Positions 2,837-18,149 of a DNA stretch of 64,000 nt are shown piece by piece (the stretch's first letter is position 1; each line of letters opens with the position of its first letter). Below the pieces are notes generated by a model that made no database searches, was not told where the DNA came from, and was given only the letters and a program-made list of their open reading frames with translations. Position numbers and translations under genes: made by a program. The DNA is taken from the sequence record MW879341.1, one strand, 5' to 3'.

Positions 2837-3259
2837 ATGGAATTTTTAGATCCTGTAACCGGGAAGTGGATTAATTCAAACCGCATTCCCGAAGAGGTCC
2901 GTGAACGTATTGCCGATACCGTGGACTGGGACAGTGAAGAAGCTCGTCACAAAATCACCGGTGACGTAGATATCTTTCACGATTGGGTAAACAACAACTT
3001 CGGGATGCGTGAGTTGAACGAAATGTTGGAACCCGCTGACGGTTCTGAACCGGTAATGCCGGAGGAACCCTTCAAGATCGACCCAGACAACCCTGGATAC
3101 AAGTACCATCAGAAACTCGTGCGTCTCTATCCAGATGCTGAGATTCGTGCCCAGGTTGTTAACGATGCGTTAGAACGCGCTATGGACGGCTCAAAGCATC
3201 TCCCGCCAGATGAGCTGTATGATCCAGACGACGAGGTGGACGACTATCATCAATGGTAA
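2837..3259 (+). CDS. acidic hypothetical protein
   Basis: The ATG at 2837 (MEFLDP) is preferred over the track's GTG at 2732, which lies inside the structured leader. Confidence 0.7.
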   Translation: MEFLDPVTGKWINSNRIPEEVRERIADTVDWDSEEARHKITGDVDIFHDWVNNNFGMRELNEMLEPADGSEPVMPEEPFKIDPDNPGYKYHQKLVRLYPDAEIRAQVVNDALERAMDGSKHLPPDELYDPDDEVDDYHQW

Positions 3260-3621
3260 AGATCTATACGGCCCAAATCGCGAAGTGGCGTAAGTGTAAG
3301 GAACTAGGTGTACCACTCATCGATACAACGGTGAAGTCGGGTATCAAGACCTTTGCGCCTTCGTGGGATATCGTTAGTCGTGTTAAGGCAGGTACTCTCA
3401 GTGAGGTAGGTTATACTGAGCAGTACCTTGCCATGATGCGTGTGAGTTTCTCAAATAACAAAGAGGAATGGTTAGCACTGCTTCGTGATAACGAAGCTAT
3501 AGCAATAGCGTGTTACTGTACGGCAGGGAAGTTCTGCCACCGATATCTTTTGGTCGATTACCTAGTTAAAGTGTGTGAGCACTTCGGTATTGCTTACGAA
3601 CTCTGCGGAGAGATCCAGTAA
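3253..3621 (+). CDS. DUF488/YeaO-like protein
   Basis: FAPSWDIV and IACYC...FCHR motifs. Confidence 0.65.
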   Translation: MVKIYTAQIAKWRKCKELGVPLIDTTVKSGIKTFAPSWDIVSRVKAGTLSEVGYTEQYLAMMRVSFSNNKEEWLALLRDNEAIAIACYCTAGKFCHRYLLVDYLVKVCEHFGIAYELCGEIQ

Positions 3622-3649
3622 ATAAATACTGAGCAGGATTATCTTGTAG

Positions 3650-3846
3650 TTGAAATATACTATCGCAATCACTCGAAAGGGTGATGCAAAAAGAATTCTG
3701 TAAATCAAAGGAAAGATTTATTAACTAATAAACTAGATACGTAGTATCTACCCTTTAAGTTGTATTCACTAAGAATACAACGGTATGTTTGGACTTGGGT
3801 TTATTAGAGTAACTTTTCCAACTAGGGGACGTTTAGTCCCCCTTGT
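3650..3846 (+). ncRNA. candidate multi-stem ncRNA or attenuator
   Basis: ORF-free 240-nt gap containing a GAAA-capped hairpin, a multiway junction closed by a 9-bp stem, and a terminal aggggac/gtcccct hairpin. Confidence 0.45.
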
Positions 3847-3862
3847 TTAAAGGATGTGAGTT

Positions 3863-4255
3863 ATGTCGAGAGAGTCAGTTATTGGTATGCGCATGCGTAT
3901 CAACGTTATACAGAACATCTTCCGCTATATCGATACTACTGGTGATTATACAGTCGGTCGGTTAGAGGACGCACTCTATCTTTTAAAGGCTGCGATAGAC
4001 GCCGGTGGTGAGTTTACCCTACCGCCCAAAATCCCACACATTAACGTATTGTTTCAGTACAACGAGTACCCGATGGATTTAGTCTACGGGAAAATACTGA
4101 AGCTGTTTGGCATGGATGGCGACACTAACGATCGCCGTATCGCGATGGCTGTCTTAATTGGCACCACGGTTAGAATCGAAACACTGATTAAATTCACCGA
4201 AAAGGTGAAATTGGCTGAAGCTGCGGGTATGGGGTTTGTTGTATGGAAACCATAG
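3863..4255 (+). CDS. hypothetical protein, paralog of 4243-4578
   Basis: Shared blocks GDYTVGRL/GGFTLSEL and FQYNEYPMDL/VQYDGYTIDM. Confidence 0.7.
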   Translation: MSRESVIGMRMRINVIQNIFRYIDTTGDYTVGRLEDALYLLKAAIDAGGEFTLPPKIPHINVLFQYNEYPMDLVYGKILKLFGMDGDTNDRRIAMAVLIGTTVRIETLIKFTEKVKLAEAAGMGFVVWKP

Positions 4256-5251: not shown

Positions 5252-5261
5252 ATCAAAATAA

Positions 5262-5278
5262 TTTCAAATATATATTAC
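5262..5278 (+). promoter_or_regulatory. early promoter
   Basis: tttcaaatatatattac. Confidence 0.75.
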
Positions 5279-5336
5279 CTCTGTGCCAATAAGGGCACAG
5301 AGCTTTTAACTATTACCATTAATAAGGAATACCATT

Positions 5337-5768: not shown

Positions 5769-5866
5769 AAAATTACATAAGTGTCTAATAATGTAGAGAA
5801 AAGTACAGTCCCTCAGCTGAACTTTAGCCGTCCTCCACGCGGTCTCTGCTTCCACTACTTCGTCTA

Positions 5867-5897
5867 AAGGGATACCCTTAATTGGGTATCCCTTATG
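5867..5897. terminator. hairpin terminator followed by TATG
   Basis: aagggataccc-ttaatt-gggtatccctt, a perfect 11-bp stem. Confidence 0.65.
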
Positions 5898-5919
5898 TTC
5901 GCCACTAAGGAAATGAGCT

Positions 5920-7883: not shown

Positions 7884-7972
7884 TAGAAACGGGACCTTAG
7901 GGTCCCTTTCATTACTCTTTTCTTTTTACCCCTATCATACGACACTATCTATTCAAACTCTGAGGGGGTTTT

Positions 7973-8699: not shown

Positions 8700-8738
8700 C
8701 ATAAAAATCGCTCTCAGTGTTTCTGAGGGCGTTTTATG
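8700..8738. terminator. hairpin terminator with CATAAAA/TTTTATG flanks
   Basis: cgctctcag/ctgagggcg stem extended by cataaaa/ttttatg. Confidence 0.65.
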
Positions 8739-16040: not shown

Positions 16041-18149
16041 ATGGCACTGAAACGTAACGAGTCAGATAAGGCCGACGGGTCTTCTGGCATGGGGTCATTA
16101 GGGGACGCGCTTTTAGAAGCCGCCGCCAAGAAACCAGACAGCGCCGTAGCTGGCGAATTGTTAGCTGGAGGTGAACGTTCACTGGAGTCGGGTAATGCAC
16201 AGGTAATTAACCCAGAGCCTGTAGCACAACCAATCCCAGCGGCTACACCAGTACAACCAGCGCCTACCGCTCGTCCTGTACAACCAGCAGCACCAACCCA
16301 TAACCACAATTCACAAACTTTCGAAAGCAAGGAACAAAAGATGGAACAAGTTAACGCATACTACGGTCTGGACGATTCTTACTCTGGCCTGAACCGTACT
16401 CTGGGTCTGACCTCTGGCGCTGTAGACGTCAACGAGTTCAAGAAGATCGCAGAGAGCATCCTGGAAAACGATCCGGCTGCATCTAAAAGCTCTTACGGCA
16501 AGCCTTCCTTTATTACTCTGGAAGCTGCTGCCCTGGGTCTGCCGTGCAACGCACTGGCGATCGTAATGAACGCACGTAACGGCGCACAGAACGTGCCGCT
16601 GGTTTACACCCTGCTGATGGAACCATCAGAGCCGCTGGCACCACGCGAATACAATGTAGGCAACTACACTGTTGAGCTGAAAGCTGTAACTGGCGATATC
16701 TACGGTGACGACTTCGCTCGTGCTGTGATGAACCACGTTAAGAAAGTGACCAACTCCGATGCCGATCCAATCGACACCGGCGCTAACGTTGTACCGAACG
16801 GCCTGAGCCTGAAGGACGACGAAAACGCAACTCACGTTCGCAGCATCCTGTTCTTCGCATTCGGCGCACTGAACACCGTTTCCGACGTAATGTTCGGTAC
16901 TCAGAAATTCCTGAGCCTGAAAGTGTCTGGCCAACAGCAGCTGCTGGCTAACATCAACTGGTCTGGCAAACAGCTGGAAACTGCTGCGGGTAACCCTATC
17001 CGTGCAGACATCGTGCTGACCACCACCAAGCGTGCTCGCTTCGACCGTAACCAGACTGCTGCACACGCTGCCGCAACTCGTCCGGTAACTGCGCTGGCTG
17101 CGTACATGGACCTGTTCTACGCACCACCGCGTATCGAAGAGAACCCGAACCAGCAGCAGTACGGCTACAGCAGCTACGGTATCCCTGCGGATGCTAAAGT
17201 AATGTGGTACCCACGTATGGTTATCACTCGCTGCCTGCCACTGGGCAAAGTGATCAACGTTGGTGAACTGCTGCTGACTCTGGCGACTGCTACCGTTATC
17301 GGTACCAAGCACACCTGGATCAACGGCTTCCGTCCGGTGCGTGGTCAGGTTGGTATCCACGACATCGGTGGTCTGGGTTGGGAACATGAGTTCGTGAAAG
17401 GCCAGCTGGCTCCTATCGATTCTCAGGACCCTAAATTCAGCCTGCCTGGTCTGCTGAGCCAGACTGTTGTAGACAACCTGTTCTACAGCATGGACATCGA
17501 CGAAGTTGGTGACCTGACCTGGCTGGAAAGCTCACTGCTGGCAATTGCCCGTGGTGGTGAAGAAGCTGCTGCTGCGAACGATTACATCATCGCCGCTGCA
17601 AACGCACTGACCGATAACAAGTTCTCTGAGTGCTACGACGTGACTCAGCCGATTCTGGTTAACGAAGTCGTGCGCGTACACACTGGCTACTACATGGAAG
17701 GTGACCAGAAAGTTGACCTGCGTAACATCGACCACCTGGCAGTCCTGAACATGACCGGTAAGAACGGTTTTGGTCTGGCACAGAAATGGTCTAACGCGCT
17801 GGTAGACTACCCGAACAACAACGCACTGTCTCAGCAGGAACGTCAGAACATCCTGGGTGAGCTGGCACCGAACGCTGTGATCAACGGCTACGCATCTCGC
17901 GTGACCTTCAACTCCGCGTTCCTGTTCGGTCTGGCGTCTGCGATCTCTAAAGCTGGCACCACTCTGGTTGTCAACGACGATGGCCGTCAGGCTACTCAGG
18001 AAGCTCGCGTGACTGCATCTTACGCGTCCTTCGGTCAGGGTAACGTGTACACCACCTCCCTGGTATCTCAAGGTTACGGCAATGGTCAGAACCGTTCTCC
18101 GCGTGCTGTACAGACTCCTGTGTCTGGCAACATCTGGGGCAACATCTAA
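16041..18149 (+). CDS. chmA: chimallin, the major phage-nucleus shell protein (phiKZ gp54 / 201phi2-1 gp105 family)
   Basis: Blocks GNPIRADIVL, HDIGGLG, GYY...DLRNIDHLAVLN and RVTFNSAF match the chimallin family. Sits directly upstream of the nvRNAP beta' gene, with an early promoter, extreme high-expression codon bias and a flexible C-terminal tail. Confidence 0.9.
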   Translation: MALKRNESDKADGSSGMGSLGDALLEAAAKKPDSAVAGELLAGGERSLESGNAQVINPEPVAQPIPAATPVQPAPTARPVQPAAPTHNHNSQTFESKEQKMEQVNAYYGLDDSYSGLNRTLGLTSGAVDVNEFKKIAESILENDPAASKSSYGKPSFITLEAAALGLPCNALAIVMNARNGAQNVPLVYTLLMEPSEPLAPREYNVGNYTVELKAVTGDIYGDDFARAVMNHVKKVTNSDADPIDTGANVVPNGLSLKDDENATHVRSILFFAFGALNTVSDVMFGTQKFLSLKVSGQQQLLANINWSGKQLETAAGNPIRADIVLTTTKRARFDRNQTAAHAAATRPVTALAAYMDLFYAPPRIEENPNQQQYGYSSYGIPADAKVMWYPRMVITRCLPLGKVINVGELLLTLATATVIGTKHTWINGFRPVRGQVGIHDIGGLGWEHEFVKGQLAPIDSQDPKFSLPGLLSQTVVDNLFYSMDIDEVGDLTWLESSLLAIARGGEEAAAANDYIIAAANALTDNKFSECYDVTQPILVNEVVRVHTGYYMEGDQKVDLRNIDHLAVLNMTGKNGFGLAQKWSNALVDYPNNNALSQQERQNILGELAPNAVINGYASRVTFNSAFLFGLASAISKAGTTLVVNDDGRQATQEARVTASYASFGQGNVYTTSLVSQGYGNGQNRSPRAVQTPVSGNIWGNI

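Follow-up and report, generated by a model that had tools for sequence, protein, structure and literature searches.

What kind of information is carried by the 241-nt gap between gp250 and gp251 of Erwinia phage pEa_SNUABM_54 (positions 3622-3862), in which an earlier reading of the letters alone (hereafter the sequence-only reading) had seen a structured noncoding RNA of about 200 nt or an attenuator? Positions refer throughout to the window, the whole stretch of 64,000 nucleotides that was analyzed, which corresponds to bases 208636-272635 of record MW879341.1 (genome 272,635 bp) and in whose parent annotation 320 of 320 genes are hypothetical. A gene for chimallin, the nuclear-shell protein, lies at 16041-18149, and its product is only 28% identical to RAY/Ea35-70-type chimallins, indicating that pEa_SNUABM_54 is a deep-branching nucleus-forming jumbo phage. 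Such phages transcribe with RNA polymerases of their own and have to transport and shield their messages, and to our knowledge almost nothing is known about their RNA signals. Searches of GenBank phages, IMG/VR and GTDB genomes returned no close relatives of the phage or of the element described here.

The gap separates gp250, a DUF488 gene (3253-3621, plus strand; Pfam PF22751), from gp251 (3863-4255, plus strand), and the element has the same strand as every neighbouring gene. Its G+C content is 34%, compared with 48% for the genome, which makes it the fourth most AT-rich among 13,620 windows of 241 nt and bears out its earlier description as AT-rich. The most AT-rich 241-nt stretch of the genome (record 69300-69580, 30% G+C) lies outside the window, between divergently oriented genes. 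Downstream, gp251 belongs to a clade-restricted family, for which an exhaustive profile search found homologues in this clade and no family outside it, while Pfam, PHROGs and the ESM Atlas gave no informative match. The gene had been read as the first of a paralog pair, a suggestion that found no support, as gp251 and gp252 are not detectable paralogues (BLASTP E = 0.46).

We then asked which transcription signals surround the gap. Early promoters of the phage share a 24-nt motif, TTTCAGATATATATTAYCTYTGTG, of which the genome has 22 clear copies, every one on the plus strand; five of these are in the window (2570, 5262, 15967, 23100 and 30379) and the other 17 elsewhere in the genome. One copy stands upstream of chimallin, and those closest to the gap are at 2570 and 5262. 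A position weight matrix built from the 22 sites scored -2.1 at best in the gap, compared with 18.8-41.6 at real sites, so an early promoter in the gap was rejected; the promoter-like sequence that had been noted at about 3637-49, gattatcttgtag, resembles only the 3' half of the consensus. A second intergenic signal emerged from k-mer enrichment: TTTTATGCC placed directly 3' of a GC-rich hairpin whose loop is often UUCG or GNRA. We take this GC-rich hairpin with TTATGCC to be a phiKZ-type intrinsic terminator. Units of this kind, with a TATG core inside, are found in the window at 8734, 12441, 21132, 49718 and 56683. Genome-wide, 38 TTATGC sites were listed in gaps, most of them after a GC-rich hairpin, and none falls in the gap between gp250 and gp251, where the terminator unit is absent. 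The main terminator motif of phage 201phi2-1 likewise resembles that of phiKZ (PMC11512511). With neither an early promoter nor a TTATGCC terminator, the gap is by position an intercistronic spacer of an apparent early operon.

The folding potential of the gap was evaluated against shuffled sequences and against the rest of the genome. The 197-nt stretch that had been marked as an RNA candidate folds at -53.7 kcal/mol (z -4.27), better than all of 200 shuffles, and direct reading of the sequence placed hairpins H1-H5 and the complementarity of a closing stem, P1, exactly where they had been reported. Taken singly, the hairpins have energies of -11.3 (H1), -3.5 (H2), -4.5 (H3), -8.9 (H4) and -12.1 kcal/mol (H5), and about 1% of shuffled versions of the gap contain a perfect 9-bp hairpin. 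By the standard of this genome the fold is unremarkable: z values of -3 to -6 were found for other intergenic gaps in the window, and perfect hairpins of at least 7 bp occur at 7.06 per kb in intergenic DNA versus 0.43 elsewhere, a 16-fold higher density. On the plus strand the fold of the gap is 10.5 kcal/mol more stable than on the minus strand. In keeping with the sequence-only reading, which did not recognize it as a known family, the gap matched no known RNA family in Rfam 15 at E values up to 10; the whole window gave no match at gathering scores, and relatives L063 and L023 gave nothing relevant. ARAGORN predicted no tRNA or tmRNA genes in the window, and BLAST and nhmmer found no second copy of the element in the 272,635-bp genome.

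Since the fold does not set this gap apart, we turned to sequence conservation. Protein look-ups led to six Logan/JGI metagenome sequences with the same gene order, representing four or five lineages, among which L024-L027 are near-identical to the window, L023 and L028/L029 share 88% amino-acid identity in gp251, and L063/L064 share 57%. The noncoding DNA adjoining gp251 is 86% identical at this last distance, compared with the 57% identity of the fast-evolving protein. Relative to L023 and L028 the gap differs by 5.4-5.8%, whereas thirteen flanking genes differ by 11-27% and their third codon positions by 24-49%; relative to L063 the gap differs by 13.8%, coding sequences by 18-39% and third codon positions by 43-64%, which is near saturation. 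Within the core (3640-3840), the difference from L063 is 2-15% per 40-nt window. Silent positions of the neighbouring genes thus change 3-10 times more than the element, and most second positions in those genes are likewise less well kept. From about 15 nt 3' of the DUF488 stop codon to about 18 nt 5' of the next ATG the sequence is conserved, beyond which only the Shine-Dalgarno sequence is kept, and this defines an element of 209 nt on the plus strand (about 3637-3845). Both edges of the conservation fall no more than about 40 nt from the gene boundaries. Over these 209 columns 27 vary. The changes are unevenly placed: the stems of H1, H3, H4 and H5 comprise 58 bases, of which 2 vary, namely the two sides of pair 3668-3685, versus 25 of 151 bases elsewhere. 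About 85% of the positions of the element are constrained, linkers included, and in the linkers and in the H3-H5 stems the sequence itself is kept invariant, beyond what pairing alone would need. A JGI metagenome scan with the H4 pattern recovered chance palindromes only, and in another DUF488 context, that of L061/L062 (DUF488 65% identical), a different 90-nt gap without the element follows the gene.

The 5' end of the element is a block, GATTATCTTGTAGTTGAAATATACTA (3637-3662), that is near-invariant in the six sequences and in which conservation sets in after the diverged 15 nt 3' of the DUF488 stop codon. It is followed by H1 (3664-3688), whose core atcactc-GAAA-gggtgat (3668-3685) forms a helix of 7-9 bp with a GAAA tetraloop and one U.G pair (folding z -4.9). 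H1 is the only helix of the element with compensatory changes, and has two such double changes, both in L063/L064: the A-U pair 3668-3685 became U-A, and in the lower stem GCA/UGC with a bulged A became UCU/AGA without a bulge, giving a continuous 9-bp helix. The U.G pair and the GAAA loop are kept in all sequences, and these features, together with the better fold of the plus strand, indicate that at least H1 is an RNA helix on the coding strand. H2 (taaatc/gattta, arms 3701-3720 within 3700-3721) is a weak A/U hairpin of the window's own sub-lineage only; its pair 3705-3716 is U.U in 4 of the 6 sequences, its loop there has a G insertion and its predicted probability there is 0, so H2 does not belong to the conserved structure into which it had been drawn.

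Further downstream come the parts whose sequence is most strictly kept. P1 (ctaataaac/gtttattag) would pair 3725-3733 with 3799-3807 over 9 bp and close a candidate junction domain at 3725-3807. Inside it, H3 (tagatac/gtatcta, 3734-3750) is a perfect 7-bp hairpin with a GUA loop, invariant in the six sequences; the linker A(C/U)CCUUUAA (3750-3758) is complementary to the Shine-Dalgarno region of gp251 (3847-3855); and H4 (gttgtattc/gaatacaac, 3759-3781) combines a perfect, invariant 9-bp stem with a hypervariable 5-nt loop. The linkers GGUAUGUUUGGACUUGG and AGAGUAAC...CCAACUA (3782-3824) flank the 3' arm of P1; 3785-3810 is invariant, with few changes at 3784 and 3811-3822. H5 (GGGGAC-GTTTA-GTCCCC, 3825-3841, with a U-rich tail to 3850) is G+C-rich, with an invariant 6-bp stem and a loop that reads GUUUA, GGUAA or GAUAA; a G insertion in L028 lengthens the stem. 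An outer a...t pair that had been added to this stem does not form, the base after GTCCCC being C. Ten nucleotides downstream of H5 lies the Shine-Dalgarno AAGGA of gp251, which is kept in all lineages (3851-3865 with the ATG). These comparisons upheld the expectation that structure would be conserved in relatives, by compensatory change in H1. Being invariant, H3, H4, H5 and P1 give no covariation signal, for or against their helices.

H5 was flagged by a terminator consensus scan, and it shares with phiKZ-type terminators a G+C-rich hairpin and a short U-rich tail on the coding strand. Many of the canonical hairpins carry a UUCG or GNRA tetraloop, and the listed sites of this genome have the TTATGC tail in common, whereas the loop of H5 is a pentaloop and its stem leads into CTTGTTTAAAGG, without TTATGCC. 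In the tail 3' of H5, 5 of 8 bases are U, with an interruption in L063/L064; the U-tract is poor and unconserved. H1, H3 and H4 are not terminator-like.

The loop of H4 changes in an unusual manner. It reads ACTAA in the window, TTAGT in L024-L027, ATCAA in L023, ATTAA in L028 and L064, and TTAAT in L063. TTAGT is the exact reverse complement of ACTAA, between near-identical genomes, and TTAAT is the reverse complement of the ATTAA found in the near-identical L064, so that H4 has inverted twice. Such flips imply that, during replication, the two arms interact as DNA, and that the orientation of the loop is irrelevant, so that it is neither a seed nor a recognition site; recurrent loop flips in this way serve as a natural marker that function rests in stems rather than loops. 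Small hairpin-loop inversions are known from chloroplast noncoding DNA, and the likeness is close, with an exact reverse-complement loop between perfect repeats and recurrence (twice in H4, and probably also at 5871-5894); here they occur in a phage genome, and the likeness concerns the mode of mutation and not the function of the element. The arms of H3 recur as well: 10.7 kb 5' of the window, at record 197938-197958 (17938-17958 of locus L021), the identical arms TAGATAC/GTATCTA are followed by TGTATTC in a very AT-rich, multi-hairpin gap of 316 nt. An exact match of the 14 arm nucleotides is expected by chance about 0.01 times.

We further examined how the hairpins might be assembled. P1 is invariant in all six sequences and never broken, and it shows no covariation. 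Its predicted probability is 0.97-0.99 in the isolated domain, 0.28-0.56 in an RNA from H1 to H5 (3662-3848) and 0.00-0.16 in the full gap, and the junction domain folds equally well on either strand. The top choice of RNAfold and RNAalifold for the full gap, a long-range stem 3653-61/3782-90, carries two independent disruptive changes and was rejected. No long-range helix other than P1 agrees with all lineages, which makes a junction plausible and unproven; H3 and H4 may be closed by P1 in this way. The complement between linker and Shine-Dalgarno region (3750-58/3847-55) is 9 nt long in three lineages, a length reached in 18-19 of 2000 shuffles (about 0.9%), 7 nt in the window (19% of shuffles) and 6 nt in L063/L064 (63%), neither of the latter being significant. 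This pairing is the predicted closing helix in L023 and L028. It would cross P1, as would suit a switch; the evidence for such a switch is thin and was noticed post hoc.

Conservation of this kind is not confined to one gap. Between 1600 and 8000, 5 of 6 intergenic gaps (2522-2836, 3622-3862, 5252-5336, 5769-5919 and 7884-7972) have changed 3-10 times less than the early genes beside them have at third codon positions, and often also less than these genes have at second positions. The conserved gaps differ from L023 by 2.4-7.8%, against 24-49% at third positions, and those covered by L063 differ by 6-15%, against 43-64%; the exception is a short gap at 1615-1666, which is 33% diverged in L063. 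The promoter-less gap 5769-5919 differs by 4.6-6.0%, and its 9-bp hairpin at 5871-5894 (GGGATACCC-TTAATT-GGGTATCCC) shows two compensatory stem pairs in L063, while its loop, TTAATT, reads AATTAC in L023, an inversion with one change. A conserved, strongly folded leader of about 240 nt also runs from promoter 2570 to gp249 (2594-2836; gap z -5.4), and relatives show compensatory changes as well as mismatches in its 14-bp hairpin (about 2649-2697).

These gaps bear on the question whether the element has any function of its own. Recent recombination of intergenic linker DNA, with hairpins as by-products, could leave noncoding stretches with low divergence, and there is a hint of mosaicism in that gp255 is 20-21% diverged from both L023 and L063, and gp254 16% versus 38%. 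However, the 3-10-fold shortage of changes is common to 5 of 6 gaps and has its edges where gene and gap meet, and such edges in several independent gaps favour purifying selection over recombination tracts; moreover, substitutions avoid stems or are compensated, and the element occurs once in the genome, whereas the shuffling cassettes of T4-type phages are repeated. We consider a functionless linker very improbable. Still less credit is due to a small protein gene. The gap had been described as free of open reading frames, which is correct apart from one frame of 21 codons (3785-3850, MFGLGFIRVTFPTRGRLVPLV), and its short frames are not conserved. In that frame the ATG and the first 10 codons are invariant, and 3 of 8 changes fall at synonymous third positions, but it lacks a Shine-Dalgarno sequence, shrinks to 16 codons in both L023 and L063 and is frameshifted by a G insertion in L028/L029. 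A 14-codon frame from 3684 has no ATG in L063, and conservation spans the whole 209 nt, beyond the 21 codons. A function at the DNA level, through protein-binding sites or an unwinding or cruciform region such as a replication-initiation zone or an operator, would account for the extreme A+T content, for perfect Watson-Crick repeats (H3, H4, H5 and P1) that fold equally on both strands and are invariant beyond pairing, for H4 arms that interact as DNA and for the TAGATAC/GTATCTA arms in a second AT-rich gap. Against it, the U.G pair of H1 would be a C.A mismatch on the other strand, and the GNRA loop and compensatory changes are typical of RNA; no iterons or repeated boxes were found, and similarity to the record 197938 locus over the whole gap falls short of significance (28 of 300 shuffles score as high). 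The absence of a GC-skew switch nearby led us to reject a replication origin, and we regard action as DNA as unlikely overall.

A more serious contender, to which we would give perhaps a minor share of belief, is a small RNA of about 190 nt that would act in trans or bind protein, run from H1 to H5 and be made either from an unrecognized promoter in 3637-3662 or by processing of the gp249-gp250 3' UTR with its end at H5. Its conserved edges are sharp, 15 nt past the upstream stop and about 18 nt before the next start; a stable 5' hairpin stands at the beginning and a G+C-rich hairpin with a U-rich tail at the end; the constraint on about 85% of positions is more what one would expect of an RNA with partners than of a passive spacer; and, were the RNA to start at 3662, a fold with P1 enforced would lie within 0.1 kcal/mol of the optimum in every lineage. 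Small RNAs of this sort have been mapped in 201phi2-1 and phiKZ (PMC11512511). What weighs against it is the promoter: the early-promoter matrix scores below 0 over the 5' block, and no similar block exists elsewhere in the genome. A phiKZ-like middle TACT box at 3658-3661 was likewise discarded, being mutated in L023 and L028 and placing the start inside H1, as was a late TATG start at 3784-3787, whose T is lost in L063. As the middle and late promoters of the phage are undefined, 3637-3662 may still contain a promoter that we do not recognize. Phage translation start regions pair no better with the element than with shuffled controls, and the freely flipping H4 loop offers no seed. Of the noncoding RNA of about 200 nt that had been proposed, the selected, structured, noncoding element thus stands, and the promoter that a stand-alone RNA would need was not found in the gap.

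In sum, the element is a selected, structured noncoding stretch, in which substitutions avoid stems and those in H1 are compensatory as in an RNA, and the explanation that we tentatively prefer is a cis-acting structured RNA spacer or leader inside an early operon. An early polycistronic transcript would run from the promoter at 2570 through gp249, gp250 (DUF488) and the element to gp251-gp253, an operon that we infer from the arrangement of genes and signals. Within it, four independently folding hairpins, H1, H3, H4 and H5, would be joined by the conserved A/U-rich linkers. The element could act as a processing and stability module that sets apart the cistrons on its two sides, by halting part of the transcription at H5 and so lowering read-through, or as a leader that sets gp251 translation, the last because H5 lies just ahead of the Shine-Dalgarno sequence and a linker is able to pair with it. 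The attenuator that had been offered as an alternative would be one form of such a leader, with the shrinking of the anti-Shine-Dalgarno pairing to 6 nt in the most distant lineage as a point against it. The sequence-level invariance of the linkers and of H3-H5 exceeds what simple stabilizer or terminator hairpins would require. Given that silent sites are saturated, this invariance suggests specific partners and argues against a purely passive role. A bolder variant, to which we assign a rather low probability, would make the element one of a set of ultra-conserved, promoter-less structured early RNAs, in the form of a junction RNA or a protein-RNA particle with a dedicated role that would account for the constraint on about 85% of its bases, and constituting a new RNA family; marking early transcripts for handling, export or localization, or binding a phage or host factor, would be examples of such a role.

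Known systems offer partial parallels to the spacer or leader that we prefer. PeSL (promoter-early stem-loop) cassettes of T4-type phages are present in many copies per genome and contain an early promoter. The element resembles them as conserved, hairpin-bearing intergenic DNA between fast-evolving early genes, and differs from them in being single-copy and without an early promoter, for which reason we rejected a shuffling cassette of this type. Closer to hand, transcriptomes of phiKZ and 201phi2-1 contain 5'UTR-derived and intergenic small RNAs shorter than 250 nt (PMC11512511), and ONT-cappable-seq mapped sRNA001-011 in 201phi2-1 and an sRNA upstream of gp182 in phiKZ (PMC11512511, PMC10914365). 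Like these Chimalliviridae sRNAs, the element is a short (<250 nt), structured, noncoding stretch beside a gene start in a nucleus-forming jumbo phage, conserved among relatives and with a hairpin end just 5' of a coding sequence. It has no sequence similarity to them and no promoter motif upstream, and it lies between two cistrons of an apparent early operon rather than behind a mapped start. Most likely, then, the element represents a new sequence family among the structured leader or intergenic RNAs, which are already known from jumbo phages.

A wider pattern emerges, in which intergenic islands without a promoter have diverged far less than the surrounding early genes, so that in these "hypothetical" early regions the most constrained information sits between genes. 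With several neighbouring gaps alike, such islands are concrete, testable candidates for RNA-level control in nucleus-forming phages.

Three further observations concern the relatives. pEa_SNUABM_54 is a soil isolate, and its relatives, near-identical or 5-15% diverged, come from food, fermentation, animal-gut, air and "money" metagenomes and also appear in several organism-labelled sequencing runs. The four sequencing runs examined contained the L028-like haplotype only and yielded no usable sign of transcription, and a lone run labelled "RNA?" yielded a single 151-nt contig over 3610-3754 at low depth, from a library that may contain DNA. Finally, L063/L064 carry an 8-nt insertion just 5' of the DUF488 stop codon (3362-3372, versus 3614-3621 of the window), and the C-terminus and stop of the protein differ there.
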